Positions 8,101 to 19,152 of a stretch of 64,000 nt of DNA are shown in pieces. The stretch covers positions 18,972,001-19,036,000 of the forward strand of contig OZ116712.1 of assembly GCA_964199315.1 (NCBI GenBank). The letters run 5' to 3'. The notes under the pieces are model-generated. The model had not been told where the DNA came from, ran no database searches, and saw nothing but the letters and a program-made list of their open reading frames with translations. Both the position numbers and the translations under genes were made by a program. The stretch comes from Orbicella franksi (taxonomy: Eukaryota). Within the stretch, counting starts at the first letter, position 1; each line of letters opens with the position of its first letter.

Positions 8101-8751
8101 ATTTGCCATAAGATGGTAAGGAGAAATGAGGCTTTCATCACAGGCGCAGATAAAAAGGAAAGATTTAAGAGGATGGATAAGATGTCATTGCCATGTAAAA
8201 ATTACAGTCCATAATGACATAAGTAGTTTTGATCATAACAGACTGCCAAGAAGCATTTTTCCTGCCGTGGGAGATCGACACGTGGCGCGCGAACTGGCTC
8301 ACGAGGGACGCGCGACTCGCAGATAATCGCGAGTCTTCGCGAGTCCGTAAGTTGAAACCATTGCTTGAAGTTCTGACCAACACACCCTAACAAAATGAGC
8401 TGTCCATCGTTTGCGCGTGAACAAAACAAATGAAGTCTATTCAGAGAGAAAGGAATTGATATACAAACTCCAAAGCAGAAGTCTTTATTTCTGATCAATG
8501 TTTTACCGACATCTGATCAACGAGCTTAAGGCGGAGTGCCTCAGGGTCACCTTCTTAGTAATCAGTATGCAAGACAAAATGACAAAGGCTCTTAAAGAAA
8601 CGTTCCATGATTGGTTTGAACAAGCGAAAAGATTAGCATAATAAACAGCCACGATTCCAAGAAGAGCTAAAAAAAGACAGTAACAAGACTTCATTGTTTC
8701 GAGTTGAGTTCCGCGGAAACCTTGCTTTACTCGCTTGTTTCTGAACACGAC
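5105..8751 (+). repeat. Segmental duplication: upstream block of TRIM-NHL unit 1
   Basis: Colinear similarity seen by eye to 61100-64000 and (from about 6550) to 52700-54121. Boundaries approximate. Confidence 0.8.
6901..7931. mobile_element. Non-autonomous TIR DNA transposon (AcademH-like) with RecQ-type helicase remnant
   Basis: About 145-bp TIRs (TAGACTACGAGTAGTCCC...GGGACTACTCGTAGTCTA) and a 9-bp TSD AATTCAAAC (6892-6900, 7932-7940). The element is absent from the paralogous sites near 53190 and 63240. Internal decayed EQIEA..RDVLANLPTGFGK..SVLVISLLNNIV resembles SF2/RecQ motifs I-Ia. The superfamily assignment is inference. Confidence 0.7.
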
Positions 8752-9468
8752 ATGGATATCAAAACGTTGCTCCGTAATCTTCGTGAAGAAGTGTCTTGCT
8801 CGGTGTGTTCCGACATATTTACCGATCCAAAAAATTTGCCATGCTTACACAGTTTCTGTCTGCACTGCTCGAAACAACGGCATAGCACGAGCCATGGCCG
8901 CGACACCATCAGATGCCCGAATTGTCAAGCCGTTAGCAGAGTACCTGAAAGTGGCGATCTGAAAGATCTTCCAACCAGTCTTTATCTGAATGGCTTGATT
9001 GATGTGCTGGCAATCAAAGAGTGCAGAAGTAGTCAAGTAAGATGTGGGAACTGCGAGAAGAAAAGCTTCGAGACTTCTTATTTCACTGTCAAGAGTGCGT
9101 AACTGCACACAACATCATGCGAAGCAATAAAGATCACCGTGTTCTGGCGCTGAAAGACTCTCAAGACAAGGACTATGAGGATGTGCTAAAGCGACCTGTG
9201 TTCTGTACAAAGCAACGGCACGAGAACGAAGAGCTAAAGTAATTTTGTAAGAACTGTGAAATGGCAGTTTGCCAATCTTGTGTTTTGATAGATCATCCTG
9301 GTCATGCTTTGGAGCACATAGAAGACGAAGCTCAAAGACGGAAGATTGAAATCAAATCAATGATTGAAACACAGAAGCGTAATTTACAAGCAAAGCTGAC
9401 TGCTGTTGGTAAACTTGATGAAGACTATGCGAAGATCATATAACGAGGCTAAGAGGTGAAGAGGGACG
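8752..9468 (+). pseudogene. TRIM71-like: TRIM-NHL pseudogene, segment 1 (RING, B-boxes, start of coiled coil)
   Basis: Near-identical to 54122-54850 but with a frameshifting deletion near 9080 and in-frame TAA stops near 9240, 9441 and 9450. Ends at the LTR insertion. Confidence 0.9.
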
Positions 9469-9622
9469 TGTAGAGAACTGGAACTAGTTATTATAGAACG
9501 ATAGGGGACTGGCACTAGAAAAAGAAGAATGTAATCCAAGATAGCGTGAAACGCTACGAGTGCGTATTAAAAAGTTAGATGCTCTGTTGTAATTTGTCGT
9601 TTGTTGGGCGTGTGGACTAACA
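9469..9622 (+). repeat. 5' LTR (154 bp)
   Basis: TGTAGAGAAC...GACTAACA. Differs from the 3' LTR by 2 substitutions and one 1-bp indel. Confidence 0.97.
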
Positions 9623-9626
9623 AAAT

Positions 9627-9643
9627 TGGCGACCCTGCCAGGA
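9627..9643 (+). promoter_or_regulatory. Primer-binding site, tRNA-Arg(ACG)-type
   Basis: TGGCGACCCTGCCAGGA lies 4 nt after the 5' LTR and is complementary to a tRNA 3' end ...TCCTGGCAGGGTCG-CCA, which resembles invertebrate tRNA-Arg(ACG). Confidence 0.8.
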
Positions 9644-9799
9644 CCTAAAACTCAAGGACAATGAAGGACAGTAGGAACCGCTCGTTTCGAACGATTTTGG
9701 TATGTTTTTGAGCTTATCTGTGTTTTCTTGGCGACCACGTGCTTTGTAAGTTGCCCGCCATATTTGTCAACCCGTGTGGAGAAGAGCGAAGGACACACT

Positions 9800-11071
9800 A
9801 TGGCCGAAGACCTTCAACTTGAAATACAGTCTAACATTTATGCCGCGGATTGGAGTTCACTCGAGCGAATTGCAGAGTTCTTAAAAGTCGGAATTGAAGG
9901 GAAAAGCAAACTATTCGTGGCGAAACTTATCGTTCAGCAACTCGAGGAAGGAATTGGCAAGTTAAAAGAAGCCGAAGTTGTTCCTTACCTTGAAGGTGTG
10001 AAAAAGTTGTTGACAGAAAAACCATCTTCTGGCATCAAGGAAGAAGGTAAGAGTGGAAAGATTGTTCAAAGTGATTCCAAACCTCCCACTATAGCGAAGG
10101 AAGACTCGGTCCAAAAACTCTTGGCAACCAGCGCTTTACGTAGACAATTTAAGATCAGTGGTCAAATCGGGGAGCCTGAGCAGAAAGATAAAATTAGCTT
10201 CTCCTCACTGGCGCGTCAAATTCAAACGGGGTTGGCCCAGGGTTATGCTGAAAATGAAATTGTTGATGGTGTTATTCGTTCGATCACACCTGGTATGGTG
10301 CTTAGAAGTTACCTGGAAACTTACAAAGACCTAACATTGGATCGGTTAAAGAAAATTCTCCGTAGCCACTATGGTGCGAAGAATACATCAGAACTCTATC
10401 AAACACTAGCATCATTATGTCAGAGCCCAAAAGAATCACCTCAGGTGTTTTTGATGAATGCCCTAGATCTGAGGCAGCAGATTCTGTTTGCATGTAGTGA
10501 AGAAGATGATGACACATCCCTACATTATGACTCTGGGCACGTACAGCGTCTGTTTCTTCGAACAGTAGAAACTGGTTTGCAGGATGAAAGTATTCGTGCT
10601 AAGATTCACCCATTCCTGAAGGACCCCAATGTATCAGATGAAGTGTTAATGCAACAGATGAGTATGGCAGCCTCAGCAGAAAAGGAGAGGGACAAAAAGC
10701 TAAGGAACAATAGCAAGACCAAACCACCAGCGTTATCAGTATCTGCAGTATCTTCTGATGACTCACCTAACGGAAAGGAAGAAAACAAGAAAAACACCCC
10801 TCAGAATGATCTTCTAACAGCTATCAGTGCAATCAGGTCAGAAGTTGAGGCATTGAAAAGTGAGGTCAGAAAGAAGAGCACCGACCAAAGTGTACCCCAT
10901 GGGAAGTGGCCGGAGAGAAGAAGACCACCTTTGTGTTCAAGCTGCCTTGAAAACAAGAAGGAGTATTGCAATCACTGTTTTAAGTGTGGGAGCGACTCTC
11001 ATTTTGCAACAGGGTGTAGGAAGCAGTTAAACAGGAATCGACTGCTTCCGCGAGACGGGAAACAGTCGTAA
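9800..11071 (+). CDS. gag: Gypsy Gag (423 aa) with C-terminal CCHC zinc knuckle
   Basis: Long ORF after the [17 protein letters not shown] knuckle preceded by CSSC..CNHC. First ATG at 9800. Confidence 0.9.
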
Positions 11072-13146
11072 ATCCACCCAAGTCTCACCAATGTAACAAC
11101 TGCTGTAAAACTGGAGTTGAGCATGGACAGCTTAAGAGATGTAGTCAGTGTCGAAGTGTATGGTATTGTTCCGCAGAATGTCAGAAAGGACACTGGTCTG
11201 AACACAAGGTGTTGTGCCAAGCAATAAGTCATCTCTCTGAGGCAAGTACGAGTAAGTCTAAAGATTTTGTAGACCCAGCCTGTGTTAGCCATTTAACTCC
11301 AAGTGAACATGCCAAAGTTATTGGCCTTGTTGGTAAGAAGTGTATGGTAAAGTGCTTCCTCAATGACTGTGAATGTGACTTGCTATGGGACACTGGTGCC
11401 CAGGTATCCATAATATCAGTCGAATTGCTTCAGCAACACCTAGGACAAGTAGCTATTAGACAGTTGTCAGAGCTCCTGGATGCGAATCTAAATTTAACAG
11501 CAGTAAATGGGACTAAGGTACCCTACGTTGGGTGGGTGGAAGTCAGAGTGAAGTTAACCTCTCTCAGCAGTGATAGTAGTCAAGAAGAAATGTTAGTGCC
11601 TTTCCTTGTAACATCAGAAATGTTAGACTGTCCTATTCTGGGATACAATGTCATTGAACAGCTGGTAAGCCAGGACCAGAATCCCAGGCCAATTATTTAC
11701 AAGAGTTTCCCTGGAAAAGATAAGGCAAAATTAGATGCCTTGGTAAACTTCATTCAGAGTTCAAGTTCAGATGCCATTTGTAAACTGAGAACTGGAAGAA
11801 AAAATGTGGTCATACCTAAGGATAGCACAGTTGCTGTCAGTTGTCGTGCAAATGCAGGACCTGTGTACAAGCAAACACCAGTGTTGTTTGAGCCAGACAA
11901 ACTAGTACAGTTATTGCCAGAGGGCTTGGAAGTTAATGAGACTTTGTTGAACATCAAACCAGGAAAATCATCCCGTGTACAAGTTGCTGTGTACAATGGT
12001 ACAGATCATGTCATCACGCTTAAGAGCCGCACCTCGTTAGGAGTTCTTCAGACAGTGAAATCGGTGACTGCGGCAGACGTGAGGCCGAGTGAATGCAGTA
12101 TCCGGACCGACCAACAACATCTAAGGGAGCACGAGCCTCAAGGGCCGACAAGACCAACTCCTTCTGGGCAACAAGATGGAGAAAGCAAAAACCATCTCCC
12201 GGCAGTTAACCTTAGTGGCTTAAACCAAGATCAGCGAATTGTAGCTGAGAAAATGCTGAGGGAAGAGTATGAGTCATTCTCATCCAGTGAAGAAGATATT
12301 GGTTGCATGCCTGATCTGGAAATGGAGATTAACTTGAAGGATAGCCAGCCAGTGCAGAAGAAGTACACGTCAATCCCTCGACCGTTGTACCCAGAGGTGA
12401 AACAGTACATTGAAGACCTTCTGAACCAGAATTTCATCACTGAATCTAAGTCTCCATATTCCTCTCCAGTTGTCTGTGTCCGAAAGAAAGATGGGTCTCT
12501 GAGACTATGCATCGACTACCGAGAACTTAACCGCAGGACTATTGCTGACAGACATCCTATCCCTAGAGTCCAAGAAACCCTGTATAGTCTTGATGGAAAT
12601 AGTTGGTTCAGTGTTCTCGATCAGGGTAAGGCATACCACCAGAGGTTTGTGAGCAAGGAGAGCAGAGCAGCCACAGCATTCATTACACCATGGGGGCTGT
12701 ACGAATTGATAAGGATCTCATTTGGATTGATGAATGCGCCTGCCAATTTCCAGTGGTGTATGGAACGGTGCTTGGGTGAACTGAGGGACAAAGTGGCCAT
12801 ACCATACCTTGATGACATCATAGTATTTAGCAGGACATTTGAAGAACATGTTGAGCACCTGAGAACCGTGTTAAGAAAGTTGCGTGAACATGGAGTGAAG
12901 TTGAAGCCGCGTAAATGTAGTTTGTTTGAACGTGAGGTCCAGTTTCTAGGAAGAGTTGTGTCAGGGGATGGTTACCGGATGGACCCAGGGTGTGTTAAGG
13001 CTATCGAGAAGTTAAAGGAAGTGTCACCTAGAACTGTTGGTGAAGTCAGACAGCTTGCCGGAATATTAAGTTACTATCGAAGGTACATTAAGAACTTTGC
13101 CAGAATTGCAAAACCAATTTATGATCTCTTAACTAGCACTGGGTAG
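11020..13146 (+). CDS. pol: Gypsy Pol part 1 (-1 frame): MYND zinc finger, aspartic protease, reverse transcriptase; ends at premature TAG
   Basis: Frame is open from 11020. It contains [39 protein letters not shown] and RT motifs ([15 protein letters not shown]). TAG at 13144-13146 is followed by an in-frame RNase H region (TDASKDGLGAVL). Confidence 0.92.
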
Positions 13147-15315
13147 GATGGTCAACCACCCTCAAAGACACCAACCTGTTGGGGTAGGGAACAGCAACTC
13201 GCCCTTCAAGAGTTAGTGAGACACCTCAGTCATTCACCTGTTATGGCTTACCCAGATTTCTCAAAACCATTCACTCTACAAACTGATGCAAGTAAAGACG
13301 GTCTTGGGGCAGTGTTGTACCAAAACCATGATGGGGTCACGAGCACTGTCACCAGCTGAAAAGAAGTACCACCTTCATGCAGGCAAGCTTGAGTTTCTGG
13401 CTCTAAAATGGGCAGTGGCTGACCATTTCCGTGATTACCTTTATTACTCTCCAAAGTTTACTGTTTTCACGGATAACAACCCTTTACATACATTCTAACA
13501 TCAGCAAAGCTCAATGCCACAGGTTTGCGGTGGATTAATGAATTGGCCGATTTCCTCTTTGAAATCAAGTATCGACCAGGAAAAGCCAATGCGGATGCTG
13601 ACACCCTGTCCCGAATGCCAGTCAGCTTTGAGAACTATATGGAAAGTTGTTCAGAAGTAGCTAGTCAAGATGTTCTGGATGCTGTCACTTCCTCAATCCG
13701 TGACACTAACACTGTTCAGACCGCTTGGTTGTCATCACTTATAGCAGTGCCTGATATCTTAAAGGAAGAGTGTGTTAACATTCCAACTATGCTACCTAGT
13801 GAACTTATCGCAGCTCAACAAGAAGATCCCACAATCGGTCGTGTTTTGCACTTTATGCAAGTCGGAAGCCGTCCGACCTATCAGGAGAGACAGGAAGAGT
13901 CAGCTATTGTACGACAGCTCTTACATGAATGGAACAAACTGCTCATTGCTGAAGATGGAATTCTTTGCCACAAATCTGGATCTAGAGACCGAATGGTCTT
14001 ACCCAAGAAATACCACAGAAGGGTGTATGAAGAACTACACGAAAACATGGGGCACCTGGGTACAGACAGAGTAGTGGAACTAGCTAGAGAACGTTTCTAT
14101 TGGCCGTTTATGAGGGCAGACATTACCCATTATGTCACGAAAGTGCGCCATTGCCTAAAGCAACGAAAACCTGGGACTCACGTTAATGCACCACTTCAAC
14201 CTATTGTTTCTACAGCACCTTTCCAACTTGTTTCCATGGATTTTGTTCATCTCGAACCAAGCTCGGGCGGAAACCAGTACATATTGGTGATCATGGATCA
14301 CTACACCAGATTTGCTCAAGCGTATGCTACCCGTGATAAGTCTGCGAAGACTGCTGCTGATAAATTATATAATGACTTTATCATGAGATTTGGATTCCCA
14401 GAAACCATCCATCATGACCAGGGTGGAGAGTTCGAAAACAAGCTCTTCTACAACCTTGAGAAACTCAGTGGGATTAAACATTTACGGACAACACCGTATC
14501 ACCCGCAGGGTAATGGGCAGGTCGAAAGGTTCAACCGGACGCTTTTATCCATGCTGAGAGCCTTACCGGAGAAACAGAAATCCCGCTGGCGTGACCATCT
14601 CAATAAGGTAGTTCATGCATACAACTGTACCCGGCATGACTCTACTGGATTTTCACCTTTCTATCTACTGTTTGGTAGAAACCCGAGACTACCTATTGAC
14701 TTAATGTTTGGCTTGAAACCTCCAGAGGGATTTTCTACATATCCTGAATATGTCAGAAATTGGCGACGAGCAATGAAAGAAGCTTATGATTTGGCCTCTG
14801 CCCATGCAAAGAAAAGTGCAGACGTGGGGAAACAACGGTATGACAAGAAAGTCAGACACACTGCGCTGTGTGAAGGAGATCGTGTTCTTGTACGAAACAT
14901 GACTGAGCGTGGTGGCCCGGGAAAGTTACGACCTTACTGGGAGCAAGAAATCTATCTGGTAACTCAGAAGTGGAAGGATATGCCAGTTTATGAAGTAAAG
15001 CCAGAGAGTGGAAATGGAAAGTCAAAAGTTCTCCATCGCAACATGCTATTACCATGTTCTTACTTGCCAGTTGAGACCCCACTTAAGTCATCAAAGAGTC
15101 GCCGTACAGTATCTAGGAGGGCCAACAGACAGCAGGCTTCACAAGAGGAGACAACCGGAACTACTGATGAGGACATTCTTAGCCTCACACCTGATAAGCT
15201 CCAAGAACTTTACCAGTCTACAAGAAATCAATGTGAGGATCATTGTGGCATTGTTCCAGAGTCACATGTAGTTGAAGAGGACATTGACCCTTGTCAAGTT
15301 GATAGCCCAGACTAA
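13147..15315 (+). pseudogene. pol: Gypsy Pol part 2: frameshifted RNase H and integrase (ORF 13525-15315)
   Basis: RNase H is split by a deletion near 13335 and a 1-nt deletion near 13490. Integrase shows MGHLG, VSMDF, HHDQGGEFEN, GQVERFNRTL and the GPY/F-like KLRPYW. Confidence 0.9.
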
Positions 15316-16037
15316 GAGGGAGAAGAAGAAGACCCAGAGCAACCAGTTGGTACAGTAGATGATGAGGCTGCAGATAGCTTACCCCTTAGACAGTCACAAC
15401 GTATGAGCAGACCACCTCTTAGGATGACCCTCCTTTCAAACCAGTTCTACAGCAGGAGATCAAGGCGTCAGAGTATCGTACCCACAGCAGTTGTGGCAAC
15501 CTGCCACAGTATCATGGATGCTACAACCTGTTCTGCAGCCCTATAGCTATTTTGCACCTTTTCCAGTATCATCACAGCCGATGTACCCTGTGCATATGTG
15601 GTGTTATTAGCAGACCCTTAGAAATTAACGTGAGAAGAAAGGAACTGATTTGCACCTATTGAGGCTACGTTCATCCTAGATAAGACTGTTAAATGTTTCC
15701 TTTTGGTATTGTATAATTTCGTACAATGTTTTGTTTGTGTGTAGAGGTTCAATCTCCTTTCATTAAGAGAATTTTTTTTTTCTCTATCTCGGAATATTCT
15801 TTGTACAAGGAAGTCAAATCGTGTTAGAGATAAAGGCGTTAGGCATTGGAAAGTAATATTGCCCCAAAGATAGAACAGTGACACCTGAGTGCAACCTACG
15901 CTGTTTTTCTGGCCTGATCAACCAGAATACTTTTGTTCACCCCAGGATGAGATACAAGTGTACAAAGAACTGTTATATGAGATAACCTAGAAGAGACTAT
16001 TGTCTATTCGTTCATGTTGAGGACAACATCTTTTTCC

Positions 16038-16050
16038 AGAGAGGGCAAAA
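16038..16050 (+). promoter_or_regulatory. Polypurine tract
   Basis: AGAGAGGGCAAAA immediately precedes the 3' LTR. Confidence 0.75.
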
Positions 16051-16203
16051 TGTAGAGAACTGGAACTAGTTATTATAGAACGATAGGGGACTGGCACTAG
16101 AAAAAGAAGAATGTAATCCAAGATGGCGAGAAACGCTACGAGTGCGTATTAAAAAGTTAGATGCTCTGTTGTAATTTGTCGTTGTTGGGCGTGTGGACTA
16201 ACA
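16051..16203 (+). repeat. 3' LTR (153 bp)
   Basis: Direct repeat of 9469-9622, followed by TSD GACG. Confidence 0.97.
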
Positions 16204-16207
16204 GACG

Positions 16208-16766
16208 TTCAGAGGACTGTTGGCAATTTAATTGCCAATATTGAAGCGAAGAAGCAAACTATTTTTGCAGCAGTGGAAGACCAAACAAAGAAATCACTCG
16301 AAAGTCTAACAACGCAAAAGACCGAGATTGAGCATCAAATAGAGGTGATCAAATCATCGTTGGATAAAGCTGAGAAAGTTTTGACACGAAGTGCAAACGC
16401 TGAAGTCGCTCAAGTGAAAAAGTCATTACAAACAATCTTGGAGGGAGTTGATCAAACTACTAAGCCAACTGAGCGTGACCTGAAAGATCTTCCGACGTTG
16501 GATTTCGTGCCAAATCCAAAGGTGTTGAAAACTGTCAACACCGAAGAAATTGGAACACTGAAAATACTGCAGCAAACTGAAGCTAGTCAGTCTGTCGCTG
16601 AGGGCAAAGGACTTGAAGAAGGAACTGTTGGAGTTGAAGCACAGTTTGTTCTGACCACAAGAAACGCAGAGGGAGAGCAGTGTTACAATAAACATGACCG
16701 TGTAACGGTAGAGATCTGGGACGAAGAAGGACGAGAATGCGCAACGGAAGTGCGAATAAATGACAA
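16208..16766 (+). pseudogene. TRIM71-like: TRIM-NHL pseudogene, segment 2 (coiled coil, filamin domain)
   Basis: Resumes exactly after the TSD and is colinear with 54858-55415 (ASQSVAEGKGLEEGTVGVEAQFVLTTRN). Confidence 0.9.
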
Positions 16767-18412
16767 CAAGAAGATCTGTTAGATCTTATAACCGCGCTTT
16801 TAAAATTTAAGTGTTTGCTTAGCACTACAGTCAAAACGCACTGCACATTCCAAAGCAGTTCTTGATGATTCTTTTGTTACTGTAGACATCACATCACTTG
16901 ATCAACAGACTCTATCACTGCATTGTCAGTCGTAGCCGTTGTGAAATCTCCGATGAAGTAATGATCTTAATCTGGAACTTTCTTTGGGATATGTATGGAC
17001 ATGAACGATATAAACGATACGATAATAACACTATTAACAACAGCTTTCTTTCTTAAAAGTCACGATTAAATTTAATTGGTGTTTTCCACTAGTAAAGGGC
17101 TAGCAAAGTAGTCACACGAGTCACATAATTCAAGACTTCCGTTATCCTTGGCTATCTTTAGTACGGTGGTTATTTCCCTACCAATGACGTAATCGTTGCA
17201 TGTTCTGCCATGGTCTTTGCTTGGCTTGCAAATATTTAATTTTCCTTCCGATCTATGAGCTCGCTGCGATGAAACAGCCAAAGAATTTACTTCATTTGCC
17301 TAATCCACAAGAAATACTAGCAAAACTACAAATAAATTAATGACCGTCGCTTCTGCCGAAATAACCTTGCAAAGTAAACGCGATCTTATTTGTCACCTAC
17401 GGAAAGTGAAAGCTGCAACGTCAACGCATTCGATGGCTGACGTAATACTTTTTTTAGCGTGGTTATTATTTTTTTAATCCAACGCTTCGATAAAACCAAA
17501 AGAAAATATATTTTACCCACATCAAAGAAAACAATATCCGTAAAATTGTCCGTGTATTAATGTTTTAAGAGCTTTTGGCGAACAAACCACACGTTGCGAG
17601 ACTCGAAATTTGTCCGAGCGGAGGTCTGCGTCTGGTCACCGACAAAAAAAAAAAACAGAAGATCTGTTAGGTCTTATAACTGCGCTTTTAAAATTTAACT
17701 GTTTGCTTACCACTACAGTCGCAACGCAGTGCACATTCCAAAGCAGTCCTTGATGATTCTTTTGTTACTGTAGACATCACATCACTTGATCAACACAAAC
17801 TCTATTATTGCACCATCAGTCGTAGCCGTTGTGAAATCTCCGATGACGTAATGATCTTAATCTGGAACTTTCTTCGGGATGTGTATGGGGATGAACGATA
17901 TGAACGATACGATAATAACACTATTAACAACAGCTTTCTTTCGATCTTATTCGTCAGGTAGCGAAAGTGAAAGCTGCAACATCAGCGCATTCCATGGCTG
18001 ACGTAACGCCTTTTTTTAGCGTATTTATTATTTCCCTTCGAATCCAACGCTTCAATAAAACCAAAAGAAAATATATTTTAACCAAAGTAAAGAAAACAAT
18101 ATCCGTAACATTGTCCTTGTATTAATGTTTCAACAGCTTTTGGCGAGTAAACATCACAGGTTGCGTCATTCAAAATTTGGCCGAGTGGAAGTTTGGGTCT
18201 GGTCACCGACAAAACTAAAAAAAAAACAAATATAAAAAAAAAATAAAATAAACCACGGGCAAACCATGAACCGCGCTCGGCCCATGGCCGCGCGGTTAAA
18301 AAAATAAACCACGGGTAGAACATGAAACGCGCTCGGCCCATGGCCGCGCGGTTAAAAAAAATAAAGCTCGGGTAGAACATGAACTGCGCTCGGCCCATGG
18401 CCGCGCGGTTAA
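16767..18412 (-). mobile_element. Helitron-like composite non-autonomous insertion (two head-to-tail units plus three terminal hairpin repeats)
   Basis: Removing it restores tgacaa|taaggatgg of the intact paralogue (A|T site, no clear TSD). The minus-strand end has the hairpin AAGATCT-gtt-AGATCTT then CTTG. 16771-17050 and 17385-17650 are repeated at 17659-18225. Confidence 0.6.
18245..18412. repeat. Three ~57-bp tandem repeats, each with a GC-rich hairpin
   Basis: Unit ATAAACCACGGGTAGAACATGAAnCGCGCTCGGCCCATGGCCGCGCGGTTAAAAA occurs three times. Confidence 0.9.
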
Positions 18413-19152
18413 TAAGGATGGAAGCTACAAAATCACCTATTCACCCAAAGATCAAGGCAGATACAGAGTGACCGTGAAGGTAAACGGGAAACACGTTCTT
18501 GATAGTCCTTTTTCTATTGATGTGAAATTATCTCATTCAAGACTTGCTTTTTCTTTTGGAAAAGAAGGTTCGTCTGTCGGAATGTTTAAGCATCCCTGGG
18601 GGGTGGCAGTGAATGCCAGGGACGAGATAGCTGTAACTGATAGTTTGAACCAGAGTTCAAGCCTTTGATAGTGATGGGAAATACTTAAGATCTTTTTTTC
18701 GGGAAGGTAAGAAAGTGGGCGAATTTAAGGATCCAGCGGGAATAACTTTTCATAAAAATGGAAATATTTTCGTAGTAGACCAGAGTAACCATAGGATCCA
18801 GATTTTCAGTGGGAAGGGTGAATACGTGGGTATGTTTGGTGGAAAAGGAAGCCTTGATAGTCAGCTTTCGGATCCTTGAGGTTTATCTGTAGACAGAGAT
18901 GGAAATATCATTGTTGCTGATACAGGCAACAAACTGATTAAGATCTTTTCTCCTGATGGCAAGTTTCTAACGAAGATAGGTGGGCAGGGTTCTTTTACTT
19001 TTCCTATCCACTGTGTTCAGTGTGATAGATATCTCATAGTGTCAGACCGAGACGAACATTGTCTTGAAGTTTACGACAGGAATGGAAACTTTCAGTACAA
19101 GTTTGGAAAGCAGGGTGGAGGGGACGGAGAGTTAACTTAGCCCCGTTGTTTG
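18413..19152 (+). pseudogene. TRIM71-like: TRIM-NHL pseudogene, segment 3 (end of filamin, NHL blades 1-5, C-terminus deleted)
   Basis: Colinear with 55416-56155 but with stops (e.g. TGA near 18878, TAG 19138) and indels, then jumps to sequence matching about 56565. Confidence 0.88.

Follow-up and report, generated by a model that had tools for sequence, protein, structure and literature searches.

The chromodomain of chromoviruses is the classic accessory domain of Ty3/Gypsy elements; in betaretroviruses, the nucleocapsid-dUTPase transframe protein (MMTV p30, M-PMV) carries an extra domain that follows a -1 frameshift and lies between nucleocapsid and protease, and in HIV-1 the p6*/transframe region, a disordered peptide, modulates activation of the protease. 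Accessory domains of this kind show how retroelements engage their hosts. Only a few are recognised in LTR elements, including the chromodomain, dUTPase, an extra RNase H and a few others, and a review of accessory domains names the chromodomain as well as an exonuclease domain without mentioning MYND (PMC6338049). Here, we describe a MYND zinc finger at the start of Pol in a Ty3/Gypsy element of the coral Orbicella franksi, located in a window of 64,000 nucleotides (the whole stretch of DNA that was analysed; assembly GCA_964199315.1, contig OZ116712.1, positions 18,972,001 to 19,036,000, forward strand).

Like the chromodomain, the finger is a small host-type recognition module fixed clade-wide in a Gypsy Pol (PMC6338049), but the chromodomain resides at the integrase C-terminus and directs integration, whereas the finger is found at the Pol N-terminus, before the protease. 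By analogy with the betaretroviral dUTPase, it would be present in the frameshift product only and may stay fused to nucleocapsid, although the dUTPase is an enzyme and MYND a docking module. With HIV-1 p6* it has in common that it follows the gag-pol frameshift and precedes the protease, but in place of a disordered peptide there is a predicted folded zinc finger with a conserved ligand-binding face. Host MYND domains, such as those of ETO/CBFA2T1, DEAF-1, SMYD1-3 and ZMYND10, have the same C4-C2HC spacing, predicted fold and contact positions, but these are linked to SET, SAND, NHR or PHD/Bromo/PWWP domains, whereas the finger of the element is a stand-alone Gag-Pol module of ~45 residues.

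The sequence-only reading that drew attention to this locus named chromodomains and PHD fingers, but not MYND, as known retroelement add-ons, and in agreement with this we found no published MYND finger in an LTR-retroelement polyprotein in the full-text literature (a scope that leaves out Repbase Reports and subscription journals), where MYND and Gypsy occur together only as incidental co-mentions, for example a fungal MYND gene near a Gypsy insertion. We therefore treat the finger as an apparently new accessory domain in an unusual place for a Gypsy clade, with an earlier description still conceivable. As the finger is clade-wide, under purifying selection and apparently restricted to the frameshift product, it represents a tractable handle on a host factor that may be used or disarmed by retrotransposons in early-branching animals.

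The element and its MYND finger

The stretch from 9469 to 16203 is a structurally complete but defective Ty3/Gypsy (Metaviridae) LTR retrotransposon insertion (Table 1). The features that place it there are direct TG..CA LTRs, a short target-site duplication, a primer-binding site, a polypurine tract, a CCHC gag and the order protease, RT, RNase H and integrase. Pfam domains in the window pol come in the order zf-MYND, RVT_1, Integrase_H2C2 and rve, while the gag ORF had no Pfam match, its N-terminus matching a gene model of Oculina (P0001). RNase H is degraded in the window copy, which is therefore uninformative on the activity of the element; Pfam RT_RNaseH is present in the relatives P0023 and P0032. 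The chromodomain that would mark a chromovirus gave no Pfam match in the integrase ORF or in full-length relatives. Among named sequences, the element is closest to gene models from the stony coral Oculina patagonica (94% identity).

Table 1. Features of the MYND-bearing Gypsy element, in window coordinates.
Feature	Position	Strand	Basis or remark
Target-site duplication GACG, 5' copy	9465..9468	+	identical 4 bases at 16204-16207
5' LTR, 154 bp, TG...CA	9469..9622	+	98% identity to 16051-16203
Candidate primer-binding site TGGCGACCCTGCCAGGAC, TGG-starting, 4 nt past 5' LTR	9627..9644	+	sequence reading
gag ORF, 423 aa, ATG at 9800, stop 11069-11071	9800..11071	+	
gag CCHC knuckle, near gag C-terminus	10976-11017	+	just upstream of MYND, other frame
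Candidate -1 frameshift slippery heptamer G_UUA_AAC	11026..11032	+	gag register
Stem-loop, 7-bp stem, 11039-11045 with 11062-11068	11039..11068	+	starts 6 nt past heptamer
pol open frame, first part: MYND, linker, protease, spacer, RT	11020..13143	+	
MYND zinc finger, pol residues 25-66	11092..11217	+	Pfam E=2.2e-10, ligand conservation, predicted fold
Linker: SHLTP motif, low-confidence flexible stretch, then helix into protease	11218..11316	+	
Retropepsin-type protease	11317..11664	+	DTGA 11389-11400, Foldseek, weak Pfam gag-asp_proteas match
Reverse transcriptase RVT_1	12478..12951	+	Pfam E=9.6e-30
RNase H region, degraded, with sequence loss and five in-frame stops	13144..13476	+	translation
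pol second part: integrase H2C2 14002-14169, core 14212-14505, C-terminal tail	13477..15315	+	Pfam
Polypurine tract AGAGAGGGCAAAA, abuts 3' LTR	16038..16050	+	
3' LTR, 153 bp, TG...CA	16051..16203	+	98% identity to 5' LTR
Target-site duplication GACG, 3' copy	16204..16207	+	

The element lies inside an apparent TRIM-NHL-type host gene of the same orientation (window 8671-9099, 16153-16779 and 18300-18665), with flanking host ORFs encoding a RING finger upstream and TTC3-helical/Filamin and Filamin plus NHL downstream. The insertion is probably intronic, since the empty site is not covered by any long ORF. Immediately past the element, window 16758-18157 contains direct repeats of ~150 bp that are 888-890 bp apart, as well as 130 bp repeats 565 bp apart, with 85-92% identity; these may have arisen from duplication of Filamin-repeat exons in the host gene.

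The finger claimed by the sequence-only reading is a genuine and complete MYND zinc finger. The 42-residue peptide is the exact translation of the + strand, in a frame that is preceded by TAG at 11017-11019 and remains open as stated. The frame had been called -1, which is correct relative to gag; a minus-strand meaning of that label can be ruled out, as the minus strand there is full of stops. The spacing was also as claimed (C-x2-C-x12-C-x2-C-x5-C-x3-C-x7-H-x3-C), with C25, C28, C41, C44, C50, C54, H62 and C66 as the putative zinc ligands in the C4-C2HC arrangement, and the position at the N-terminus of a Gypsy Pol was borne out by the protease motif DTGA 58 residues past the finger. The Pfam scan proposed with the claim returned 40.8 bits against the cut-off of 22.7 for zf-MYND (PF01753), covering profile positions 1-39 of 39, and the fingers of relatives also exceed this cut-off. 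A MYND regular expression matched the six-frame translation of the window once, and had no match in 200 shuffles.

A profile built from 28 element fingers matched solely MYND domains in the PDB, including SMYD1 and DEAF-1 (both 2e-10) and ETO (1.5e-8). The AF2 model of the MYND-linker-protease segment has a mean pLDDT of 77, with residues 78-89 below 50, and its protease half matches the Ddi1 RVP and the EIAV and M-PMV proteases in Foldseek. As the Foldseek matches of this two-domain model were to protease only, the finger was modelled separately. This finger-alone model (pLDDT 83) has the predicted beta-beta-alpha cross-brace fold, and its top 47 PDB matches in Foldseek are all MYND domains, including those of SMYD3, SMYD2, SMYD1, AML1-ETO, ZMYND10, ETO2 and DEAF-1, with an rmsd of 1.2-2.6 A and a TM(query) of 0.5-0.7. 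Among the structure and profile matches, no host paralogue stands out as the donor.

Candidate frameshift signal and selection on the finger

The pol frame is -1 relative to gag and the two overlap by 49 nt. The sequence around the overlap has the features of a -1 frameshift site, with an in-register heptamer, a 6-nt spacer (5-9 nt expected) and a putatively stable downstream structure. The heptamer G_UUA_AAC also occurs in gag register in a second family of the same genome (family B, L051) and at the equivalent site in close relatives from other assemblies (L055, L056 and L058), while distant families have GGGAAAC, in register in family D, or TTTAAAC at the equivalent site; altogether, a slippery heptamer in gag register was found in the three families checked. 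A GGGAAAC at 11057-11063 was also considered as the slip site of the window copy and rejected, because it is out of gag register, although its homologue in family D is in register. The stem-loop of the window folds with z=-3.5. In an alignment of the signal from ten diverged elements, which share the 6-nt spacer, 94% of cells in the 7-bp stem are paired and compensatory change is seen at three pairs, compared to 17-57% pairing in a control where the partner was slid by 1-3 columns. Further, dS in the gag/pol overlap is ~0.12 vs ~0.6 elsewhere in pol, which is consistent with double coding and RNA structure. The first cysteine of the finger is encoded 20 codons past the slip site and would lie ~27 residues past the CCHC knuckle in the predicted frameshift product. 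As the finger is encoded after the slip site and in the pol frame, we infer that its production is confined to the minor Gag-Pol product, via -1 frameshifting.

Aligning 31 sequences with 34-89% identity to the window shows no variation in the eight ligands, Y49 and Q55, at least 90% conservation of W59, and Ser or Thr at the position of S42 in most rows; in the linker, H91 is nearly invariant and P94 invariant. The dN/dS analysis that had been suggested for the finger (Nei-Gojobori; pairs window-L055, window-L058 and L055-L058) gave 0.12-0.18, similar to the protease (0.15-0.21), with 0.04-0.11 for RT, and by this measure the finger is under purifying selection. In the MYND domains of ETO and DEAF-1, the Gln that follows the sixth ligand forms a hydrogen bond with the SMRT/N-CoR peptide, the Trp four residues past this Gln packs on a proline of the peptide, and a Ser/Thr between the third and fourth ligands is also important (PMC3555993). 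Judging from the alignment, contact positions of this ETO/DEAF-1 type are present in the element fingers, as Q55, W59 and mostly S/T42.

Copies and relatives carrying the finger

The sequence-only reading had named absence of the finger from other family members as the observation that would speak against it; instead, the finger is present in other copies as well as in diverged relatives. A DNA search of the 497 Mb O. franksi assembly found eight loci of the family, 96-100% identical. The finger locus is present in all seven full-length copies, although in three it contains a stop or a ligand mutation, and the eighth has kept the finger but is missing part of the protease. The flanks of five copies are unrelated. 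In two (L010 and L011), located on the same contig 177 kb and 224 kb away, the flanks are 98-99% identical to those of the window copy, and these are therefore segmental duplicates of a host block and not transpositions. A protein search of the genome with MYND and protease gave at least 75 matches, including at least four diverged families with the finger, at 48-52%, about 45% and 43-44% identity. In the 43-44% family at least 25 copies have open frames of 1582 aa, and a representative copy has 171-bp LTRs and the same layout of gag, slip site, MYND and protease.

For relatives in public data, the RT-integrase part of a full-length relative was used as the first query, and the best 120 proteins (58-93% identity) were inspected. 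Because gene callers place the start of pol at its first ATG, the beginning of many ORFs falls within or past the finger, and ORFs were judged on the finger only if they reached at least 75 aa upstream of DTG. Among the qualifying ORFs of these best 120, the full finger is present in 26 and a start-truncated one in 21, several more have the last ligands only, and the exceptions are two visibly decayed copies. A second search with a deep-branching member as the query returned 62 proteins, 36 of which carry the finger; the remaining 26 include 23 that are too short N-terminally, two distant lineages that are finger-less and also without the SHLTP motif, and one gene model with a splice artefact. 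Overall, in more than 180 relatives the finger is found in every far-reaching ORF except the two decayed copies, the splice artefact and three lineages lacking it.

Named taxa with the finger include Oculina and Acropora, with Nematostella, Actinostola and the jellyfish Sanderia represented by N-terminally truncated sequences, and the taxonomic range is based on a small number of named sequences. In the ESM Atlas, the closest cluster is 96% zf-MYND, with Cnidaria as its main source. The survey for MYND-protease fusions proposed by the sequence-only reading thus finds a fusion that is clade-wide and not peculiar to the window element. On the sequences compared, the finger is an old, selected trait of a large, mostly cnidarian Gypsy clade and not a recent exon capture. 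As a side observation, in the gene models P0001, P0021 and P0023 (Oculina) and P0252 (Acropora) a false intron bridges the gag-pol frameshift, and they are annotated as hypothetical host proteins; in P0001 gag is fused to the finger, while in P0252 gag is spliced to the post-finger linker and the finger is skipped.

The finger-less relatives include P0013, a Logan contig protein, and a fish family with members in Merluccius polli (P0014) and Engraulis encrasicolus (P0019), which are 79% identical in their overlapping part. Like the coral elements, these have the same protease and the linker with SH(L/I)(T/S)P and LVGxKC, with 45-49% identity to the coral elements in RT (PR-RT), but they differ in having a cysteine-free spacer of ~45-70 residues instead of the finger between knuckle and linker. 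In quick ML trees, MYND-bearing rows occur on both sides of the deepest ingroup splits, and the finger-less rows nest with MYND-bearing rows with 98% SH-aLRT, albeit with long branches. This nesting suggests that the finger was lost in P0013 and in the fish family, and the teleost Gypsy family was possibly acquired by transfer between phyla.

Possible roles of the finger

The Ser/Thr, Gln and Trp contact positions of ETO/DEAF-1 are kept in the element fingers, and for this reason we infer a peptide-docking role, with the finger as a small docking module within Gag-Pol. Gag-Pol itself, or a nucleocapsid-MYND or MYND-protease processing product, would recruit a partner with a proline motif, which would be brought into the assembling particle or onto the nucleoprotein. 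A ligand within the element itself was considered and rejected: there is no PxLxP in the Gag or Pol of the window, and relatives show only scattered, unconserved ones in integrase tails. As a conserved PxLxP is thus missing from the element's own proteins, the partner would most likely be a host protein. MYND domains differ in specificity and some are without a known ligand. With this in mind, we consider it reasonably probable that this selected, frameshift-only MYND of a Gypsy clade docks a partner with a proline motif. A more specific version, that a metazoan Gypsy lineage uses a frameshift-only co-repressor-docking finger to capture or neutralise a proline-motif host factor, such as a co-repressor or a chaperone, is conceivable and put forward tentatively. 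If true, it would represent a new class of retroelement-host interface, in a clade whose finger-bearing members would be abundant in corals and anemones and which has finger-less offshoots in fish.

Docking of an external partner has to be weighed against a role confined to the polyprotein, in which the finger acts as a regulatory pro-domain for the protease, i.e. a zinc-stabilised N-terminal extension that times Gag-Pol dimerisation and protease release with no external ligand, comparable to the restraint of HIV-1 protease by its p6*/transframe segment. The finger is placed directly upstream of the protease via a conserved linker (SHLTP, LVGxKC) and restricted to the frameshift product, and the MYND of DEAF-1 self-associates in vitro (PMC3555993), all of which would fit. 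However, the AF2 model has two independent domains joined by the low-confidence linker, with no predicted contact, a purely steric role does not require the invariance of Q55 or the near-invariance of W59, and the finger-less P0013 and P0014/P0019 keep the same linker and protease. We thus regard a pro-domain as unlikely.

It had also been proposed that the finger could tether the integration complex or counter silencing. In favour of tethering the pre-integration complex to chromatin, or of disarming silencing, through a host co-repressor or chromatin factor, host MYND proteins, for example ETO, DEAF-1 and BS69, bind co-repressors such as SMRT and N-CoR (PMC3555993), the co-repressor-binding residues are conserved in the element fingers, and the finger could travel with the cDNA if it is still fused to nucleocapsid after processing. 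Direct tethering of integrase, however, is unlikely because the finger and integrase are at opposite ends of Pol, with ~1000 residues and the protease between them, and protease processing would separate the two; known targeting modules, such as chromodomains, are instead attached to the C-terminus of integrase. The finger may still counter silencing through a bound host co-repressor, and such a silencing antagonist is a special case of host docking; as a whole, this proposal seems to us quite unlikely.

The finger could alternatively be a second nucleic-acid-binding zinc module that extends the single CCHC knuckle and helps in handling genomic RNA or primer tRNA. Its closeness to the knuckle in the predicted frameshift product, and the presence of only one canonical knuckle in these Gags, agree with this, but MYND is known for binding protein and not nucleic acids (PMC3555993), and the conserved surface residues are of the peptide-recognition type, which makes such a role improbable. 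Lastly, the finger could be a chance arrangement of cysteines, or a host MYND exon picked up by accident in one element and without function. This is favoured solely by how often retroelements are expected a priori to capture exons, and it has a negligible chance of being correct, given the finger in family copies, diverged families and other species, the invariant ligands, the low dN/dS and the shuffle result.

Irrespective of its role, the finger affects how MYND domains are counted in these genomes. In the O. franksi assembly, ~59 of 99 zf-MYND matches, both counts being lower bounds, coincide with MYND-protease Gypsy matches, so transposons are likely to inflate counts of MYND genes in the genomes of cnidarians; in this coral, more than half of the MYND fingers counted would be transposon-borne. 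Several other MYND matches are located within open frames of 750-1400 aa, for example in clusters at C13:18.63-18.65 Mb and C15:20.66-20.69 Mb.
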